64,000 bases of DNA, from NCBI RefSeq assembly GCF_035594765.1, contig NC_085847.1, forward strand, positions 8,866,001 to 8,930,000, written 5' to 3'. The translations under genes were made by a program, and so were the position numbers. The notes under the pieces are model-generated. The model ran no database searches, was not told where the DNA came from, and saw only the letters and a list, made by a program, of their open reading frames with translations. Source of the DNA: Anolis carolinensis (taxonomy: Eukaryota). Below, piece after piece: positions 1,172-64,000 of this stretch; position 1 is the stretch's first letter, and every line of letters starts with the position of its first letter.

Positions 1172-20636
<19,465 letters not shown>

Positions 20637-23052: not shown

Positions 23053-25600
23053 AGCATGGATGCTCTCGGATTTATCAAGTCAACCTTGGATCATGGAAGA
23101 TTTTACATGTGTCTGTGTTCAAACAGTTCCTTACAATAGTAATTGATCTTTATGCAAAGATGCCAGAAATCATCCTAAATACGTAGACTCTAGTGCTCGC
23201 CATAATACAATATATTATCTAAGATATATAATCATACATACATGTATGTATGTATACAACTTCACCATTATGTGATGGCTTTGACCTCTTGTCCACTGTG
23301 TTGGGAACAGGGGACAGCATAATATTGGTGTCAGACCACATCTTTGTTTTCAAGCAGGGTCATCGCAAAGCCTTTTCTGTCACCACTATGTTGGTTGGCC
23401 ACATATACACTGGTAGAAGATTTTTGATCTCCTCTGGCAAAAAGTGTGCTACAGTATAAAGTCTCCCCTCTCCTAGCGTGTTTTTATTTGCCTTCCATAT
23501 CTCACTCTGTCACAATCAGGGTAGATGCCCTGAAATTTCCAGTTTAAGACATATAGGTCTTAAGACATGAGATAGGCCCATATAGGTAGGCCCATACATA
23601 GTTCAGTGGGAAAGCAGATTTTATTTTTACACATAGTCTTTGGGAAATTTGTCCCAAGTTGTGGAGAGCTCTTGCTCTCACCACTGGGATGGATGAGCCC
23701 CAGCCTACGTTCTATGATAGCGTCAAACATTCCTCTCTCAAGCATAGCTCCAGCTACAAAGTGGCCTTCCTCAGTGTTAGTAGCTCCCCCTTCTATGCCC
23801 TCATACTGAAGAAAGGGGACAATAAATATGTGTTTGTGGTATGGTAGAATAAGTAGTTGAGAACTTCCAATTCATGGTACCAAAATGGGATCAAGAACTC
23901 ATGGACCCAAAGGAAATGTATACTTACCATGCTAATGAAACATTTGAAGATGTGAGATGGCCCAGTGGAACCCATTCATCAACTTCTCCATTGATTCAAG
24001 AAGCTCTTGAGAAATAAGTACTCTTCAAAAATGTAACTGAGTTAGTCTTGTTTCAGCATAAAATGACACAAAGGACTCCTGTAGCATCCTTGAGACTAAG
24101 CAAAAGAAATGCCTAAGCTTTTGTGGACCCCAGTCCACTTTCATTCATAAGTATCTGAGTGACAGGTGAGCCATTCCTTTGAAATGAGTAACAAGAACCA
24201 GGTTTTGCGAACTTCATACAGGAAATGCCGAGGGGTTCTCCATCTCACGCTCGTCTCCTTGGACAAATAGCCTCTTGAATCAGATTTTGTTGAAACCCAA
24301 AAGTGGCTGCCCGGGTGGTGATAGGGATTCAGGACTGCCTTCGACCTGGGTGAAAGATCTAAACACGGTGGTGATAAAATGCAGTACAGCAGTCTTCTAG
24401 TGTCTTCCACGGACACGGCCGATAAAAGACAAATGGAGAAAAACGGGGATGGTTGCAGAGGATGGGCGAGGCATAGGTAAAACAACCCAAATTGTCTGTC
24501 TTGCACCTGTCTCGTTTGACTTCTTGCACTTCTTAACCATTTTTTCCCTAATCTCTGCTCTCACTGCACTAAAACCAAACTACCAATTAACACTGTCATT
24601 AAAACAAAAACACCCTCTGCATACTTTCTAACACAATTTCCATGGGAAGGGGAGAGAGCGTAATTCTGTTAACGCCAAACTGAAAATCAAAACAGAACAG
24701 GAGGAAGCAAAGATAAGGGGCTGCAGCCTGAATTTGGTCAAAACGTCTAGTCCTAAATTTTCATGAGAAGAAATAGGCTTGTATGCCATGTGTCTAGTGA
24801 AAACGTGTTTCCCAGGGACAATATAAGTTTGCTGTTCTTGTGTTGTCTACCTTTTAAATTTTTTTTAATTGTATTTGGAAGATTGGGGAGAGACAAGCCA
24901 ATAGAATGTCTTAACTACGTATGTCTCTCCTCATTCATGTTCAAGAAATCGCTGTTTGCATCTCAAAACTTGCAGCATGTCCTGAAGGACTCACATTTTA
25001 AAGCATGGCACAAAATGCACTCCAGTTTAAGAAGAAAGAGGTGCCCTGAACAATGGAGTGGCGGCTGTGAATTATGCTGCCGGTTGAGATCTTGAAAAAG
25101 AAATTAACCGGGATAGCAACAAAACTGATCTGTTTTTTCCAGATGGGAAATGCACAAATGAAACGATATGCAACAACACAGCTAGTTTGTATTGCGACCC
25201 TTGCTGTGGGCTGGAAAATGGAGTGATATGAATTCTGATGTGCCAGAGAGTCTCAGCATACTATGCACTTTATCCCATTTTCAGTAAGCTTTTCCACAGC
25301 CGCAGACAACCAAAGCTTGTTCGTAGATCAAGGCTTCAAAGGAATGGTACAGATTGAGCATTCCTTCTCCAGAAATCTGAAATAATCCAAAATTCTCCAC
25401 ATGAGCAGTTGAGATAGTTATAGCTGTTTTCTGATGGTTCAGGGCACACAAATGTCTTAAAAATACTGTTTTGAAATTACCTTCAGGCTATGATCTCACA
25501 TGTAGAAGGGGTCCTTATATTGAGAACTGCTCCGAGACCCAGAACCACCTCAATCTGGCCTTGATCACTGGTGGTTAATTTGAAGTTGCTTTTATACAGT

Positions 25601-53627: not shown

Positions 53628-56600
53628 ACTATATCGCAAAAACAAAAAGCACACACACACACAAATAGCCATTTGATTTGGTATCTCATAGAATCATAGA
53701 TGAGATACCAAATCAAATGGCTATTTGTGTGTGTGTGTGTGTTTTGTTTGTTTTTGCTATATAGTTTTTATTTATTTCTTAAGAATGAGAATACATAGAA
53801 AGTGGGGGAACAAAATAGATAGTGAAAAATAGTGAAGAAGAAGAATGTTGACAAGCTGGAAAGCGTCCAGAGGAGGGCGGCTAAAATGATCAAGGGTCTG
53901 GAGAACAATCCCTCTGAGGAGCGGCTTAAAGAGCTGGGTATGTTTAGCCTGCAGAAGAAAAGGCTGAGAGGAGACGTGATAGCCATATACAAATACAGTA
54001 GAGTCTCACTTATCCAAGCTAAAAAGGCTGGCAGAAACTTGGATAAGTGAATATCTTGGATAATAAGGAGAGGTTAAGGAAAAGCCTATTAAACATCAAA
54101 TTAGGTTAGGATTTTACAAATTAAGCACCAAAACATCACGTTATACAACAAATTTGACAGAAAAAGTACTTCAATAGGCACTAATGTTATGTTGTAATTG
54201 CTGTATTTACGAATTTAGCACCAAAATATCACACTATATTGAAAACATTGACTACAAAAATGGCTTGGATTATCCAGAGGCTTGGATAAGCGAGGCTTGG
54301 ATAAGTGAGACTCTACTGTATGTGAGGGGAAGCCATAGGGAGGAGGAAGTAAGCTTGTTTTCTGCTGCCCTGGAGACTAGGACGCGGAGTAATGGCTTCA
54401 AACTACAGGAAAGGAGATTCCACCTGAACATCAGGAAGAACTCCCTCACGGTGAGAGCTGTTCAGCAGTGGAACTCTCTGCCCTGGACTGTGGTGGAGGC
54501 TCCTTCTTTGGAGGCTTTTAAGCAGAGGCTGGATGGCCATCTGTCGGGGGTGCTTTGAATGAGATTTTTCTGCTTCTTGCAGGGGGTTGGACTGGATGGC
54601 CCGTGAGGTCTCTTCCAACTCTACGATTCTGTGATTCTAGGAGAGGGAGTGAAGAAGAGGCAAAGAGAAGAAGGAAAAAAAGGATTTGTGCTTTGACTTC
54701 CCATCCATGCTTCAAAGCCTTTTCTTTCATCTTCTCTGACATTTTCTTTCATTTATTCTAACCTCCATCCTTTTTGTTTGTTTTTATATGCAAGACAGAT
54801 CTATCATGAAGTTCATTCTTTCTCTCAAGATACTTACATTTATCCAATCTGTTTTATTCTTCACTTCTCTTATCTTTTGTGTCAATATGTCCCTATGTAT
54901 AATGTCTAATATTTTAATCAGCCAATCTTCAACATTTGAAGCTTCTTCCTTTTTCCAAACTCTTGCTGGAGTCAATCTTGCTGCTGCGCTAATGTGGAAT
55001 AATAATCTATCTTCATTTTTATTTAATGTTGTTGTTGTGAATCCTAGTAAGTACGTTTCTGGTTTTAATTTAAATTTGGTTCCTAACATTTTTTGCGTCA
55101 TTTTATGTGCTGTCTTCCAAAATTCTTTGATTTTTGGACAGTCCCACCATTGGTGGAAAAAGGTTCCTGTTTTTTCCCCACATTTCCAATTTTTATTAAA
55201 TTTTGCTAGCCTTTCCAGGGTGTAATACCAGCGGTATTGCATCTTATACCAATTTTCTCTAATATCAGTTGCTGCCGTGTACTTTATTTTTTTCCTCCAA
55301 ATCTCTTCCCAAAATGGCTATTTGTGTTGATTTGCCATTGAGAGCCAACATGTGGAAATTCTCATGAACACTTACGAGAGAGAATAAATTGTCAATTTAA
55401 AAAAAAACCAAAATGAGCCGTGTGAAACTGCAAAGCATCACTATTCATTAAAGAGGTATAATCTTCTGATAAAGGGGACTATTTTTCATACTACCCTGGT
55501 ACGCTTTCTGTGGTTTGTAACAAGCTACCATATGGGAAAGAGGATTTATGAACCTCTCCTTGACAAAATAAATGTTGGGTTGGGAGGAAGGATCTGTGGT
55601 TATTAAAAAAAATGAATAGTCTTCATTGCAGCTAATCAGATGGGGTAATCTGTTTTCATCCCCTTTCTTGCTCCGAACATGATGCTTTACAAGAAGCTGA
55701 TGGCATACATTTTACAATGTCATTCAATAAAAAATGTTCTGGGTGGCCAGCAGCAATTAATGTACAAACCAGAAATTTTTTTTTAATGTTTTCACATGGG
55801 CATGCTGTTGAGAGAATGTCATGTTCCTTATCCTTAAAATCTATTTTCTGTTCTTTCCACAGTTTGCTCATTGCCAACAGAGGTGAGTTATCTTTATTGC
55901 TTCTGTCAGTCATCTTTCCATGGCCTTTGCGTATGCCCAGTCCTCTGCTATTTTGAGAATGTTCTTCACAGTTTTGTACTTTTCTAAACCTTGCCACTTT
56001 CCTGTGGCTTAGTGGTGCCCATTTGATTACAAATGCAGTGACGCTTACAGCTGGAAATTTGGAAACATGGTGAATGATATAAGTGCGCACAGGTGCACGT
56101 ATTTGCATGAGTGTGCATTCTTATAACATCACTGTTGTAAAGATTTCTGTCAGTCTATGAGAATTTGTCTGTGTGCAGAGTCCCCTCAGGTTGCAAATGT
56201 GTGCTGTGTTTCTCCTACAGTACTGCGAATACATGCCCGACGTGTCAAAATGCAGGCAATGGCTAGAGAAGAATTTTCCAAACGAGTTTGCAAAACTTAC
56301 TGTAGGTAAGAAGAGGCCTGTGTTTTTTTTAATGAGCAGCTTAGGTTGCAGTCTGATATAGTGTAGTGGAATCTTTATTCATTTCTTTCCATGGTCAAGC
56401 TTAAACATTGTTGTTCCTTTCTGTGTTCTCCTTTAGAAAAATCTCCCAAACAAGAATCTGGAATTGGAGAAGGTCAAGGAATAACTGGTGAAGAGGAGGA
56501 GAAAAAAAAGCAAAAGAGAGGCAAGGTCTAAATCATTATTTGTGGGTTCGATTCAGTAGAAGAAAAGTGAAATACTAATTTGAATATGAAGACTAGCTAT

Positions 56601-57761
56601 TGTTTGCTATTTTGGGTCGGATCAGCACTAGTGGATGGACTGGAAACCCAAAAACCTGTCCCTTCTGATTCTGTGTAGCCTTGCAAGGTATAATTGGTGT
56701 TTTCTGTTTTCCCCATCCCTCCAGGTGGAAGAGGTCAGATAAAACAGAAGAAGAAAACGGTCCCTCAGAAAGTCACGATAGCAAAAATTCCAAGGGCAAA
56801 GAAGAAATATGTGACAAGAGTTTGTGGTCTCGCAACTTTTGGTGAGTGAAGAAGGACTTGGCACCCACTGGGATCTCTAATCTCTATTACTGGTTTTAAT
56901 CATTGGTTTTTTTCCCCCCAAAACAGAAATCGACCTTAAGGAAGCACAAAGATTCTTTGCTCAGAAGTTCTCTTGTGGTGCCTCAGTGACGGGAGAGGAT
57001 GAAATAATAATTCAAGGGGACTTTACAGATGACATCATTGATGTCATCCAGGAAAAGTGGCCAGAGGTGAATTATTTCTTAACCTACACTTGCGTGTCTG
57101 AGTGACTGAAAGAGAGAATTTCATTTCCTATTCTATCTATTCATTTGAAGTCGGAGCCACTGTGTGTTGTGCTTTTGCGCTACTCAGAATTGTAGTATTT
57201 ATAAGGCAAGATAGTAAGAGTGACTAGACTGGCCTCGGGTTTAGATTTTTTTCCTCAACAAAGCTTTTCATGGATTTTTGTTAGAGATTTTTCAGCATTC
57301 AATTGTGTTCTATTACCAATCAACTTTATTGGTTGAAGTATTGTGAAATAGGATTATGAAAGAGAGTGAAACCTTTCAAGTGATCTACTCTGCCCATACC
57401 ATATATAAACCATCTGTTGTTTTCATGGATTTATTTATAAATCGTAATCCTCTTGGTTATATTTTTCTTCATAAACTGAAAAGGAAAAGGCGCTTCAATT
57501 CCTTTAGATAGAGCTTTATCTTTTTACCTCCAGGTCCAATCATTCCACTAGACCTTCATACCTTCCTTTAGCAGAAAGTCTATGTGTGTGTTTTAAAATA
57601 GTTTATCTTTGTTTCACATACAAGGATTGTTTTGGGAAAGAAAAATCCCAAATCCAAGCTTGCCTTCTTCTACTAGATGGTATTATAGTGCTGATAATGC
57701 TATTTGTCTGTTGTAGGTTGATGATGATAGCATCGAAGATCTGGGAGAAGTCAAGAAGTGA
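53428..57761 (+). CDS. DENR: Density-regulated reinitiation and release factor (SUI1 domain), 196 aa
   Basis: Coding exons 53428-53527, 55863-55882, 56221-56305, 56437-56520, 56725-56841, 56927-57066, 57717-57761; total 591 nt. [26 protein letters not shown]...[20 protein letters not shown] donors at 53528 and 56521. Confidence 0.96.
53845..54640 (+). mobile_element. CR1 LINE 3' end
   Basis: Translates as [18 protein letters not shown]...[18 protein letters not shown] and [29 protein letters not shown]...QWNSLP; ends in octamer tail attctgtgattcta. Confidence 0.92.
53996..54318. mobile_element. Tc1/mariner-superfamily MITE inserted in CR1
   Basis: Perfect TIRs cagtagagtctcacttatcc / ggataagtgagactctactg with TA duplication that splits the CR1 reading frame. 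Confidence 0.9.
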
Positions 57762-58351
57762 AAATGTGTTTTTAAAAAACGAAACCTGCCTTCCGACTAG
57801 CACCGGGTTCTAATTGATGTAGCCAAAATAAGGCTTCTTCTCCGTGTGTTTGCCTGGCAAAAAGAACTGTTAAAGAACGGCACCCTTACTGTTGGCATTT
57901 TCTGTCTTGGCTATGTATATTCTGTTTGTGTTTTTGCCAAAGTTTAAACCTGGAGGAAGTGGGACGATCGTGCTTCCAGACACAAGAGTTCATTGATTAA
58001 AAAGTTATTGTTCCTCACGCAAATATTTTCTTGGTTTTTTTTCCCCTAACGGTTTGTGGTTCCTCTGGATTATGTTGTCAGAAGAAGGCGGATGGTTTGA
58101 ACAATTGATCTATAGGAAATCAAATGAGAGTTGTCTACATGTTCTGCCCCAAGTTTGCAGTGTAACAAGATACCATATTTACTCTAATTTAACGCTCACC
58201 TTTTTCGGCAAAACGACCTTGCCAAAATTAGGGTGAGTATTAGATTTGTGTAACATGGTAATCTTTGTCCTGATCCAAAACAAAAAGAGAAGCTACTTCA
58301 GGAACTGCACCTGGAGCTCTTCTTTGAAGGACGCCATCTCTAATTTAATTA

Positions 58352-58744
58352 CTGTATATACTCGAGTATAAGCCTAGTTTTTCAGCCCTTTTTTAGGGCT
58401 GAAAAAGCTCCCCTCGGCTTATACTCGAGTGAGGGTCCTGGCCGGCTTCTATTCAGGTTGGGTTATACTTGAGTATATAGGTATTCAGAGTTGGACAGTC
58501 TTATCTTATTAAAGTCTTATTATCTTAAATTACAGTTTTATATAAATATTCAAAAACATTTAACCTACTTATGCCTCAAATAATGCAATTTTATTAATAT
58601 CTATTTTTATTTTTGAAATTGACCCATAGCTGCTGCATTTCCCACCCCCATCTTATACTCGAGTCAATAAGTTTTCCCAGTTTTTGTGGTAAAATTAGGT
58701 GCCTTGGCTTATATTCGGGTCGGCTTACACTCGAGTATATACGA
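58352..58744. mobile_element. Tc1/mariner/pogo-type MITE
   Basis: TIRs ctgtatatactcgagtataagcc / ggcttacactcgagtatatacga with TA flanks. Confidence 0.85.
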
Positions 58745-59019
58745 TACCATGGCTCAATTAATTGCAATGCTGGGATTTGTAGTTTGGTAAGCCGTCAGCT
58801 TTCTTTGGCAGAAAAAGCTCAAAATTTTGTGAAATTGCATCCCCTGTGATTCCATAGCATTGAACCAAGGTAGTGAAAGTGAATGAATTATTCCTATTCC
58901 ATTGCTGGAAGCTTTGGTGTTCTAACACTTTTATTTTGAAAGAAGGAATGCTAAGCCTGCAGCAACTGTAATGCGTACCTTTAATGTCTCCGTGGCAAAT
59001 AAAATGACTTTTTCAAATA

Positions 59020-59243
59020 TTTATTTATTTATTTACAGTATTTATATTCCACCCTTCTCACCCCGAAGGGGACTCAGGGCGGATCACATTACACATATAG
59101 GCAAACATTCAATGCCTTTTAACATATAACAAAGACAAACAAACATAGGCTCCGAGCGGGGCTCGAACTCATGACCTGGTCAGGGTGATTCATTGCAGTT
59201 AATTGCACTGGCTTGCTCTCCCGCCTGCGCCACAGCCCGGGCC
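59020..59243 (-). mobile_element. Near full-length tRNA-derived SINE
   Basis: (TTTA)n tail at left; GTTCGAG B-box on minus strand near 59163; GC-rich head. Confidence 0.7.
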
Positions 59244-59628
59244 TAATAATAATCCAGGCAATACCGGGTCTCCAAGCCAGTAATGTGATAAAAACGTTTT
59301 GTTAACTTTCCCTCAACAACATTTTCCCTTTCCGAGTTGATTCATTCGATATGTGATATTAAAGTTATTAAACTCCTCTAACAATAACTTGAATAAATTT
59401 GATCCCTCCTTCGCCCTCCCTAATGGACATTGTGGGATAAATAAATAAAATTAAATGAAATAAAAAGACGGTGATGCAAAGGATCCCTTTGGAACAAACT
59501 TTTTAAAATTGAGCAACTGACGAAGCAGAAACCTTGAAATCAAGAGTTCTATATCAAATGCTATAAATTTTTATGAGGGGGTATGTGGCCAAAATCGTGC
59601 ACTCAAAATAGTCGAATGTTTTGAAATA

Positions 59629-59954
59629 CTGTAGTATCTCGCTTATCCAACATAAATGGGCCTGCAGAACATTGGATAAGCGAAAATGTTGGATAATAAG
59701 GAGGGATTAAGGAAAAGCCTATTAAACATCAAATTATGTTATGATTTTACAAATTAAGCACCAAAACATCATGTTTTACAACAAATGGATAGAAAAAGCA
59801 GTTCAGTACATGATAACGTTATGTAATAATTACTGTATTTATGAATTTAACACCAAAATTTTGCAATTTATTGAAAAATTTACTACAAAAACGTTGACTA
59901 CTAAAAGGCAAACTGCGCTGGATAATACAGAACCTTGGATAAGCGAGACTACTG
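59629..59954. mobile_element. Tc1/mariner MITE (family of 46021 and 53996)
   Basis: ctgtagtatctcgcttatcc ... ggataagcgagactactg with TA flanks; internal sequence colinear with 53996-54318. Confidence 0.85.
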
Positions 59955-60667
59955 TATAACGTTCGTTATATTCTTCGTAACTTCAAGCGTTTCCAACTTT
60001 TTTTGTAACAATATCTACTCATAAAGGGTTTGCTACTGTGTTTCTCTTCAGAGTCAGGCTGAGTTGCATCAAGGCCGCACTAGGTTTCCATGGTGACCGA
60101 GGGGGCCTATCAAAGTCCGAATCCAAACAAACAAAGAAACCCACCATCCTGGCTTGTTGAATACTGGTTTATACTCTGTTCATCAAGTAGAGGTGGCTTC
60201 TTTAGCGGAAACGTTGGTACCAGAGACAGAAATAATGTGGAAAGAAGCAGGTTTCCTGTCAGAAAACACAGGCTGCTCCATTGTGGAGAAGAAGCACACT
60301 TTGAGGTCATGTATTTCTTTGATTCTAGGGCGCACTTTTTCCTCACAAAAATATATCTACAACAGGGTGTTTCGTTTTCTTCCATTTCCCCCCCCCCCCC
60401 TGTTTTGCAGATGGTGGCATATGGTTTCCCTCCCTTTTTAGGCTTCCATAGAAGCTCCAGGCCCTCCCTTTTTCTCCGCACCATCATGGCTCTCCTGAGG
60501 TAAAAAGTAGGGGCAAATAGGGCAGTGACTGTACTGAGATGGGACACTCAGCCTCTCCTAATTTGCCCGCCTATTTCCCCCAGGTTTTTTGTTGTTGTTT
60601 TGTTTTCAATTTATGAACCATCTGTGTCACTGAATCAGATACTATCATGATATTGTGACTGTTAGAG

Positions 60668-60830
60668 ACTTTCCTTCCTTTCCTCCCCCTTCTCCATTTC
60701 CCTTCTTTTTCTCTCTTTCCTTCCTTCCTTTCCTCCCACTTCTCCTTCCTTCTTTCCCCTTTCTTTCCCTTCTTTTTCTTTCTTGTCTTCTTTCCGTTCC
60801 TTTCCTTTCCTTCCCCTTTCTCTCTTCCCC
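60668..60830. repeat. Polypyrimidine/polypurine low-complexity tract
   Basis: About 160 nt almost exclusively C/T on the + strand. Confidence 0.9.
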
Positions 60831-61919
60831 AGCTCTGGGGGGACTTCCCTCACGATGTCTCCATGGCAACAACGGCTTTCTTGGTGGCTCTTTCCTTCCC
60901 CTCATAAACAGGTCGTCTTTCTTTCCCAATGGCATCACAGAGGGCCACTTCACCTAGAAACAGCCTTTGTGGTACGGTGATAGCTCAAAGGGCCTTGCAT
61001 CAGACACATGGATGGACAAAAAAACAGACGTAAGAGTTTTTTATATATCGATATATTTATTATTCATATCTGATCTTTCCAGATTGGAACTCAAACGGTT
61101 TACAACAGGGAAATATGCAAGGTCAAAAAATATTAAAAAGCAATGAAGCCATCATATAGCATCACATGAAGAACAAGAGTCAGACAGCATGCAAATGTTT
61201 ACATGGGCCAAAGTGGAGGAAACACTGTGACTTAGGAGAAAGTCCTATTGAATCTAGAGGGACCTATGCTTCAGCAAATACACACAGGTTTGCCCAGCAA
61301 ATATGCCTGGGTGCTTTCACGGGGACCATTACAGTGGAACGAGATGCCATCAACCTGGAAGATGCCCGGCCTCAGGTATTTACAAATCCAAAGTATGACA
61401 TTTACATCCACAATGTATAGCAGGATTTATTTCTTTATTAATGGATTAAACCAGGCAGCTTACAATAAAATCAATTCGAAACCATAAATACAAACAACAG
61501 ATTTAAAAGATTATCAATATATTGAAGGATTTATCAGTTAAAAGCAGACAATTCTGCATAGCACAACCAGAAGATATAATCAGTTAGGCAGAAGGCTTTA
61601 ATAATAAGCCATGTTGTGATTTGGTGCTGAAATGATCCCAAATGTCGACGCCAGCTGGCCTTCCAGAGACAGCCGATTGCCCCCCCCCCCCCTCCCAACC
61701 CCTAGGACCACAAACAGCTCTCCAAAGCAATATTTGGCCCTTCAACCCTCCAGATCCATGGATCACCCCTTTTCAGAAGACAGAAACAGGGCATGGCACG
61801 ATTAAAAGGTTCCTTGTATTTTGAACTAGATTGTTCTGTAATTACTTTCCTAATTAAAATTGTGATAGAGCGGTGTGTTCTCTCTCCAGATACCCCCACA
61901 GATCTAATAAGAATTACCG

Positions 61920-64000
61920 CTGCCCTCCCCCCAACAAGGACCAATGAACTCTATGGAACTCCAAAGAATGGGGGGCACCAAAAGGTTGGGGTGCTCCAAG
62001 AAGGCCAAGGAACTGTGCTGACAGAGCACCCAAGAAAGAAGAATCTGGTGTGCCCCGAAAGGACCAAGAAGAGTTAGAGGTGCCTCAAAAGAACCATAAA
62101 GAATTCATGATGCCCTCCCCCCCAAACTAATAAACTCTATGAAACTCTAAATCATGGGGGGGGGGGGGGTTGGAGTGCTTGCCTACAAGATACCCAAGAA
62201 AAAAGGATTTGGTGTGCCCCAAATGGACCAAGAAGAATTAAGGGTGCCCCCCCCAAAAAAATCAATATACTTTTCAGCTATGGGGGGCACTGAAATGTTG
62301 GAGTACTCTGAAAAGACCAAGAAACTCTTCACTTGGGGGACACCCAATAAAGAAGAATGGAGATGGGTGTCCCCCCCCCCCCAAAAGCACCAATAAACTC
62401 TCCAGCCAGAAGACACCAAAGGATGGGGCCCCCAAAATGCTGAAGACTATGAAAATATGGGGAACTAACGAATAAATTGGGGTACCCTGAAAGGACCAAG
62501 AAACTCTGTGGTTGTGGGACCGAAGAAAGAATTTGGAGCCCCAAAATGATGAATGGGTGATGCTTGCCCTGATTTCACTTGACATGAAAGCTCCATTGGT
62601 AGAGAGAGAGGGAGAAATAGGGAATTCTAAAAGTTTTGTTTCTTTCACTTTTGTGTCTGCGTTTTTTTCCTCTTTTTAATTGGGTTCATTTTTAGTTGCA
62701 TTTTTTAAAATGTAATGCAAATTAAGTTTTTAAAAGAAATAAAAAACAGGGGCAGCTGACAGAAACCCAAACAAGTAGAATTTGGAGACTCAAAATGATG
62801 AATATATTTTGCACTCATTGGTATACGAAGAAGAGTTTGGGTTCTTCCAGAAGGACCAAGAAATGATGCGGCTATGGGGCACCCAAGAAAGAAGAACTGG
62901 GTGCCCCCAAAGGGCCAAGAAACTCTGCAGCTACTGGTAGCCCAAGAAAGAAGAATTGGGGGCGCCTCTAAAGGACCAAGAAACTCTGTGGCTATGGGGC
63001 ACCCAAGAAAGAAGAACTGGGTGCCCCAAAAGGAGCAAGAAACTCTGCAGACATGCCCCCCCCCAAATGGGGGGGGGGGTTGAAATATCTAAGGCTGTGC
63101 TGCAATTGGGCACCAAAGAATGAGGGCGGAACTGAAACAATGAAGGCCTTGCACGAAGTGAAATGACATAATCTTCAGAACACGAGAGAATTTCTGATTC
63201 CTGGACTCTTCACTCCAAGCCCTCAAGGTAGACCTTCATTTATAGTTTAACCTAAGGGGAAGGGAAAATGGGTGGAAATTATTTATTGGTTCCATTTCCT
63301 TTAAGAAAGTAGAGAAACAGAAAGCAGCCGCAGCTGCAGAAGGAGCAGAACAGTCCGGAAGTTGGCAACAGCCCCACCACCAGATCTCAGCAACCTCCAT
63401 GTGTGATGCTGTTCCTGATTTCACTTGACATGAAAGATCCCAAGGTAGTTGATGGCAGAGAGAGAGAAGGAGACATGGATTTTGTAAAACGATCGTTTGT
63501 TTCACTCTAATATCTGTTTTTCTATCTTTAAATGGGTGAATTTTTGTTGTAGACGAGCACCCTGAAAGGACCAAGAAACTCTGCAGCTAACAAGAACCCA
63601 AAGAAGTACAATTTGGAGCACCAAAACGACCAAGAAATTTTGCAGCTATGGATGCCCAAGGAAGAAGAATTCGGACCAAGAAGAATTACGGGTGTCCTAA
63701 AAGGACCAATAAACTTTCTAGCCATGAAGCGCCAAAGAATGGGGCACACAAACATTAAAATCTTTGAAGCTATGGGGTGCTAAGGAATACAGGGAAGGAC
63801 ACTGTCAGAAATTGACCTCTGAACCAGACAGCATTACCATTGAGAAGGAAGAGAAACAAATTCCAGCTGTTCACTTCAAATCCAGTAGATTATGATAAAC
63901 AGCCCAAAAAGACCAATATATTATCAGGCTATGAGCTGTGAAAGAAAAGAGGGCACCACTGTGTTGGGGTGCTCTAAGAAGACCAAGAAACTCTGCATCT
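61920..64000. repeat. Degenerate ~60-bp minisatellite region
   Basis: aaggaccaagaaactctg..gctatggggcacccaagaaagaagaa recurs, with 60-bp spacing at about 62851, 62911, 62971 and 63030, and looser copies near 62060, 62225, 62314, 62491, 63567, 63628, 63701 and 63980. Confidence 0.85.
63806..63966 (+). pseudogene. Degenerate, frameshifted exon resembling the N-terminal coiled-coil exon of CCDC62
   Basis: Piecewise translation QKLTSEPDSITIEK / KRNKFQLFTSNPVDYDKQPKKT / YQAMSCERKEGTTV resembles recalled CCDC62 QNIGSEVEISTIEKQRKELQLLIGELKDRDKELNDM...QQLLSWEEDRQKVLTL. Two frameshifts needed; same strand as and downstream of DENR, as in mammals. Confidence 0.55.

Follow-up and report, generated by a model that had tools for sequence, protein, structure and literature searches.

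Relics of CCDC62 exons within a minisatellite downstream of DENR in the green anole, Anolis carolinensis: a very probable pseudogene at the ancestral locus

CCDC62 directly follows DENR in other lizards. Has this gene decayed at the corresponding position in the green anole, Anolis carolinensis? The question is raised by the end of a 64,000-nucleotide stretch of its DNA (NCBI RefSeq assembly GCF_035594765.1, contig NC_085847.1, positions 8,866,001 to 8,930,000; hereafter the window), in which an earlier note, made from the letters alone, had proposed that a decayed CCDC62 exon lies inside a minisatellite, which would imply pseudogenisation. Our analysis supports this proposal. The segment 63802-63907 is very probably a true remnant of CCDC62 exon 2, belonging to a heavily degenerated pseudogene at the ancestral position downstream of DENR, as judged from its alignment to exon 2 of the lizards Pogona vitticeps and Lacerta agilis and from the remains of intron 1 and exons 3, 4 and 5 around it. 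Sequence past the window was taken from locus L001 (GCA_035594765.1, CM069373.1), which is identical to the window over 43428-64000 and extends 3761 bases further, to the window-equivalent position 67761. An L001 coordinate plus 43427 gives the window-equivalent coordinate, which is used here for all relics beyond 64000. All relics lie on the + strand.

Translation of the forward frames from 63780 reproduced exactly the three frame pieces and the pair of stop codons that the note had described. The first frame ends in KLTSEPDSITIEKEEKQIPAVHFKSSRL, followed directly by TGA TAA at 63893-63898; the second, beginning RRKRNKFQLFTSNPVDYDKQPKKT, reads RRKRNKFQLFTSNPVDYDKQPKKTNILSGYEL up to a stop; and the third reads YYQAMSCERKEGTTV. 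The exon part of this copy (copy A) occupies 63809-63907, corresponding to about codons 13-45, and is preceded by an acceptor-like 'cag' at 63806-63808. This acceptor had been called weak and without a pyrimidine tract, and the sequence upstream of it was indeed found to be purine-rich satellite sequence with no such tract. The TGA TAA pair is in the original frame of copy A. A shift of one nucleotide had been placed near 63848; compared with Pogona exon 2, copy A has a real additional base (+1 insertion) near 63851. Homology to lizard exon 2 stops at 63907, at about codon 45, and the 3′ two thirds of the exon is gone. The exon-2 relic presumably has no coding function.

The identification is carried by DNA alignment to lizard exon 2. 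A Pogona segment that starts 6 nt before exon 2 (17042-17145) matched 63802-63907 in blastn with an expect value (E) of 1.5e-5, and Lacerta 23472-23562 matched 63816-63907 with E = 4e-8. An earlier, less sensitive blastn search with Lacerta exon 2 had given a match at 63816-63869, and a further E value of 3.8e-6 was recorded for the same relic. Local DNA alignment of the relic scored 30 with Pogona exon 2 (shuffled target, 11.4 ± 1.9) and 37 with Lacerta exon 2 (shuffled target, 11.8 ± 1.9), and in both cases none of the 500 shuffles reached the observed score. The splice acceptor lies inside the alignment, as ctgtag/aat in Pogona and ctgtcag/aaa in the anole, the slash marking the exon boundary. 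At the protein level, tblastn aligned LTSEPDSITIEKEEKQI of copy A against LTSELESATIQKQRKEL, and the anole peptide LTSEPDSITIEK is much closer to its counterparts, LTSELESATIQK in Pogona and SSEPESSTIQK in Lacerta, than to the mammalian sequences.

The mammalian N-terminus given in the earlier note agrees with that of P0013 from Camelus ferus, a fused DENR-CCDC62 prediction which was our source of the mammalian CCDC62 N-terminus. The 120 matches listed for a word search with P0013 were all mammalian CCDC62 proteins. As evidence for the relic, however, the mammalian sequence of the note proved statistically insufficient, and it is the lizard exon 2 that gives significance: the camel-derived N-terminus found 63788-63862 by tblastn with 19.2 bits and E = 3.8, sixth among matches at chance level. 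Backed by this value, the first reading of the segment was chance resemblance, that is, a Lys/Glu-rich translation of repeat DNA that happens to look like a coiled-coil protein, and it was dropped after the comparison with the lizard orthologues. In its favour, besides the mammalian result, the core of the neighbouring satellite translates into QETLQL, a mimic of KELQLL in CCDC62, and the third of the pieces first assigned to CCDC62 turned out to be satellite only. Nevertheless, such a coincidence is highly improbable, since the DNA alignments to lizard exon 2 with its acceptor lie 10-13 standard deviations above the shuffles and four other CCDC62 pieces are located nearby on the same strand. 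In addition, a hidden Markov model (HMM) of the satellite has no match at 63780-63905 and none in exon 2 of Pogona or Lacerta.

The minisatellite context described before was recovered with two methods. Tandem Repeats Finder (TRF) gave a period of 59 with 3.4 copies and 77% matches at 62847-63048, and iterated nhmmer with an HMM built from those units found 25 units in L001 over 61936-65846. Inside the window the nhmmer units cover 61936-63120, 63565-63739 and 63978-64000, and further units occupy the gaps among the relics up to 65846. They are tandem head-to-tail units of about 59 bp, within the 10-100 bp range of a minisatellite. At E <= 0.01, no unit was found in the loci of Pogona, Lacerta or Anolis sagrei, or in the two anole loci on CM069374.1 that carry DENR-like genes (hereafter the DENR-Y loci), where the best E was 0.053 over this whole set. 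The piece YQAMSCERKEGTTV at 63921-63962, the third of those assigned to CCDC62 in the note and paired with LLSWEEDRQKVLTL, belongs to this repeat. It is unsupported as CCDC62 because the sequence after 63907 is a satellite unit: no alignment to lizard exon 2 passes 63907, the sequence from 63903 on aligns to other satellite units, and the unit at 63908-63966 resembles those at 61963-62018 (80%), 62252-62331 (68%) and window-equivalent 64152-64253 (82%). We also considered that the minisatellite was born from exon 2 itself, on an alignment by eye in which the core looks like the coding part around KELQLL. This origin is unsupported because the satellite HMM finds no match in exon 2 of either lizard.

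Repeat-rich regions are prone to misassembly, and the indels and stops could then be sequencing artefacts in an intact exon, a possibility already raised with the original claim. However, contigs from four runs, each of a different study, show no differing letter over 63303-64000, the sole indel in those contigs being in a G run at 63069, and two thirds of exon 2 is absent, not merely frame-shifted. Because the contigs of four independent runs carry the same letters, the frameshifts of copy A are real, and assembly error can for practical purposes be dismissed.

The note had described a single relic exon. The exon-2 relic stands, but copy A is one of three tandem copies (Table 1). Copies B and C show 79-81% identity to copy A, and all three show the same truncation and meet the satellite at the same junction, immediately before the acceptor. 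The relic of the 3′ end of intron 1 aligns to the end of Lacerta intron 1 (L004 23331-23450, ending 15 nt before exon 2) with a score of 31 (shuffles, 11.8 ± 1.9) and a blastn E of 4e-5. The exon-3 relic was matched by Pogona 18837-18874 with 84% identity (E = 1.6e-4), and its local alignments with Pogona and Lacerta cross the exon/intron boundary. The same segment was tried as exon 1 and rejected, as the end of exon 3 plus the start of intron 3 fits better (score 26 vs 13). The order of the relics is scrambled, because this exon-3 relic lies upstream of the exon-2 relic. The exon-5 relic at 64916-65119 contains two in-frame stops, and several gaps shift its frame. In the exon-4 relic the donor GT is changed to TT and there are many radical replacements. 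No relic of exons 6-8 was detected up to 67761.

Table 1. Positions of the CCDC62 relics and of associated features at the anole locus (window coordinates; those beyond 64000 are window-equivalent).
Feature	Position	Strand	Basis or remark
DENR, last coding exon and TGA stop (57759-57761)	57718-57761	+	context anchor
CCDC62 intron 1, 3′ end relic	about 61769-61889	+	pyrimidine tract and acceptor-like 'ccag'; satellite directly behind
Degenerate minisatellite, about 59 bp, core ...AAGGACCAAGAAACTCTGCAGC...	61936-64000, on to about 65846	+	TRF, nhmmer; broken by exon relics
CCDC62 exon 3, 3′ part (to 63227), GT donor (63228-63229) and about 28 nt of intron 3	63168-63257	+	
CCDC62 exon-2 relic, copy A	63802-63907	+	DNA alignment to Pogona/Lacerta exon 2, acceptor included
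Satellite unit, not CCDC62-derived	63908-63966	+	aligns to other satellite units
CCDC62 exon-2 copy B	64095-64183	+	internal deletion
CCDC62 exon-2 copy C	64469-64573	+	without the +1 insertion; 3-nt net deletion instead
CCDC62 exon 5 and part of intron 5	64916-65119	+	tblastn E = 6e-11; DNA score 66 vs 14
Intron-6-like sequence	65188-65356	+	
CCDC62 exon 4	66645-66769	+	tblastn E = 3e-6
CCDC62 intron 4 end and second exon-5 stub	66800-66984	+	score 34 vs 15; stub degenerate, with stop

With truncation, stops, frameshifts, a lost donor and a scrambled order, these pieces do not form an open frame with intact splice sites across exons, as expected of a functional gene. Nor do they look like a retrocopy: sequence of introns 1, 3 and 4 flanks the relic exons, which sit at the parental locus. 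Because intron remnants are present, the anole copy would be a non-processed pseudogene. Among Pogona, Lacerta and Varanus, whose CCDC62 exons look intact, the Jukes-Cantor distances were 0.08-0.26 with at most 2 gap positions, while those between the anole relics and the same three lizards were 0.34-0.54 with 3-11 gap positions. This excess divergence suggests that CCDC62 was inactivated long ago, perhaps tens of millions of years back or even earlier.

The ancestral position of the gene could be read from the other squamates. In Pogona vitticeps (L003) a + strand gene with a 680-amino-acid product begins 3.5 kb past DENR, and in Lacerta agilis (L004) a + strand gene with a 686-amino-acid product begins 4.9 kb past it, so that the statement that CCDC62 directly follows DENR on the same strand holds in both. 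Mammalian CCDC62 queries (the mammalian proteins used were those of camel, cat, narwhal, colugo and pocket gopher) found in-frame exons 2-8 in Pogona and exons 2-5 in Lacerta. Exon 2 gave E = 9e-27 in Pogona and 9e-28 in Lacerta, and lizard and mammalian exon 2 share 69-76% protein identity. A gene is called downstream of DENR in Thamnophis and Varanus as well, with CCDC62 exons found in both, and in all four species the distance from DENR to CCDC62 is 2.3-4.9 kb. These loci show that the ancestral squamate order is GPN3 and DENR in divergent orientation, followed by CCDC62 in the direction of DENR. In the gecko locus no gene was found within 10 kb of DENR. The 10-kb flank of Anolis sagrei is uninformative as a sister-species test, because it carries a 7.5-kb insertion and reaches only to about 60.5 kb equivalent.

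The anole relics, at 61.8-67.0 kb on the strand of DENR and downstream of its stop, have the same placement and strand with respect to GPN3 and DENR as the CCDC62 genes of Pogona and Lacerta, and show DNA homology to them in intron 1 and exons 2, 3, 4 and 5 including splice junctions. Unlike those genes, they show frameshifts, stops, a lost donor, truncated, duplicated and scrambled exons and kilobases of minisatellite, and no gene is called there.

Two other squamates showed irregularities in exon 2 of CCDC62. In Thamnophis elegans (L007:23640-23900) this exon has a 1-nt insertion compared with Pogona and Lacerta (...AAAGATCCGCGACAAG... vs ...AAAGACCGTGACAAG...), which splits it into two frames, and the annotated CCDC62 product is only 385 amino acids long. 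This is either an assembly error or a sign that CCDC62 is compromised in the garter snake too. In Varanus komodoensis (L009:15064-17322) the sequence ahead of exon 3 yielded no exon 2, and inside exon 3 the 579-amino-acid product starts; a run of N is present at 16501-16600, where exon 2 is expected.

Several points weigh against a pseudogene in the anole. The camel comparison given above is at chance level, the recognisable part of exon 2 in copy A amounts to only about 100 nt, and a search of 59.5-62 kb turned up no relic of exon 1. The annotation table holds protein-coding calls only, so that a pseudogene annotation would not appear in it, and all 20 runs holding the stretch resemble DNA, their depth being even over intergenic sequence, and none looks like RNA. 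Moreover, the exon-4 relic still has a locally open frame, and the relics were searched for in 24 kb of the X locus, ending at 67761 (3.8 kb past the window), and in the two DENR-Y loci.

The last two points also suit a different explanation, in which the relics are decayed copies left by a dead partial duplication and a functional CCDC62 persists beyond 67761 or elsewhere, for example after moving off the X. It would likewise account for the presence of exons 2 and 5 in more than one copy and for an order scrambled as after segmental duplication. We consider this explanation unlikely, since even the correctly ordered pieces (exon 4, intron 4 and the exon-5 stub) are damaged, the donor being lost and the stub being degenerate with a stop, and no intact exon 2 or 3 lies ahead of exon 4. 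Furthermore, the anole record has no protein-coding call within 10 kb downstream of DENR, the place of CCDC62 in other lizards, and the DENR-Y loci contain no CCDC62 sequence. On balance we lean slightly towards a true loss of functional CCDC62 from A. carolinensis, through decay after X-linkage and local satellite expansion. Its age would be great enough for other anoles, and perhaps other pleurodont iguanians, to share it, and the acrosome would be built without CCDC62 or with a substitute.

Like unitary (non-processed) pseudogenes, the anole copy has intron remnants beside its exon relics, intact orthologues in relatives and several independent disabling lesions; the label 'unitary' is a putative one here, drawn from 24 kb of the X locus and the two DENR-Y loci. 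What is unusual for such a pseudogene is that a higher-order tandem repeat has taken up its relic exons and multiplied them.

A possible history of the locus begins with expansion of the minisatellite at the boundary of intron 1 and exon 2, either after inactivation or as the inactivating event itself. This expansion would have cut exon 2 from its pyrimidine tract and removed the 3′ part of the exon. Block duplications of the satellite plus exon stub, spaced about 310-375 bp apart, could then have given rise to the three copies of exon 2 and scrambled the order of the exons. Truncation and invasion by the satellite would have preceded these duplications, because all three copies share both the truncation and the satellite junction. 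The +1 insertion of copy A, on the other hand, would be a later, copy-specific lesion, because copy C is without it.

Seven X/Y gene pairs are known in the green anole, and DENR is among them (PMC5741051). The window locus with the CCDC62 relics is therefore probably on the X chromosome, DENR there being the X gametolog. This DENR lies on the + strand at 53428-57761, and all of its seven coding exons match A. carolinensis DENR P0391 (XP_003222792) exactly; for DENR as for CCDC62, the comparisons were made one exon at a time, not with joined spliced models. Two DENR-like genes, with products of 227 and 198 amino acids, were found about 390 kb apart on CM069374.1 (1.317 Mb; L005 and L006), one of them adjoining a UBE2L3-like gene. 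These are the genes of the DENR-Y loci, and they agree with the Y chromosome and with DENRY as known, except that there are two copies. P0349 shows read-through into an intron whose sequence resembles that of the X copy (NYLLSCT... vs NYFLTYT...).

What would the decay of this gene mean? Nonsense mutations of CCDC62 have been reported to cause globozoospermia-like defects in the mouse mutant repro29 and in a human patient, and the gene is indispensable for formation of the sperm head and acrosome in the mouse (PMC6993856). The mammalian acrosome protein belongs to the gene family orthologous to the anole relic. While it is needed for male fertility in mammals, the copy at the ancestral locus of a model lizard appears dead. 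For the genome as a whole the case is a candidate gene loss, the decay shown being that of this locus. Our literature search found no paper linking CCDC62 with reptiles. The probable X location raises the question of the fate of testis-specific genes on the dosage-compensated X chromosome of the anole, and the locus illustrates clearly how a tandem repeat of higher order can carry exon remnants with it and multiply them. In the annotation, a CCDC62 pseudogene should be entered for this region. Although a pseudogene is an ordinary kind of object, this one is an unreported case, and the result is modest but solid for comparative genomics.

Analysis on the rest of the window gave the gene order ATP2A2 (+, about 10.9-20 kb), ANAPC7 (−, about 33-37 kb), ARPC3 (−, about 43.5 kb), GPN3 (−, about 48.6-52.8 kb) and DENR. 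GPN3 and DENR stand head to head at a CpG-rich promoter (52.5-53.5 kb), and this head-to-head adjacency is common to every squamate locus that we fetched. These genes lie far apart on human chromosome 12. An Rfam scan of 52000-64000, which includes 52674-52714, gave no family at gathering thresholds, and in the ESM Atlas CCDC62 found only generic coiled-coil clusters.

Two observations were made in the sequence that follows DENR. About 1.7 kb downstream of the gene, a 64-nt element is shared by Lacerta agilis (L004:19591-19654) and Anolis sagrei (L002:21216-21279) with 89% identity. It had no blastn match in the A. carolinensis flank and no Rfam match (L004 19300-19950, E <= 0.01), and a conserved non-coding element and a shared repeat are both conceivable. 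In A. carolinensis, the DENR 3′ flank at 58350-59950 is densely filled with dispersed repeats of very high copy number, with summed contig depths of up to millions, and copies of these repeats are present in the DENR-Y loci as well.

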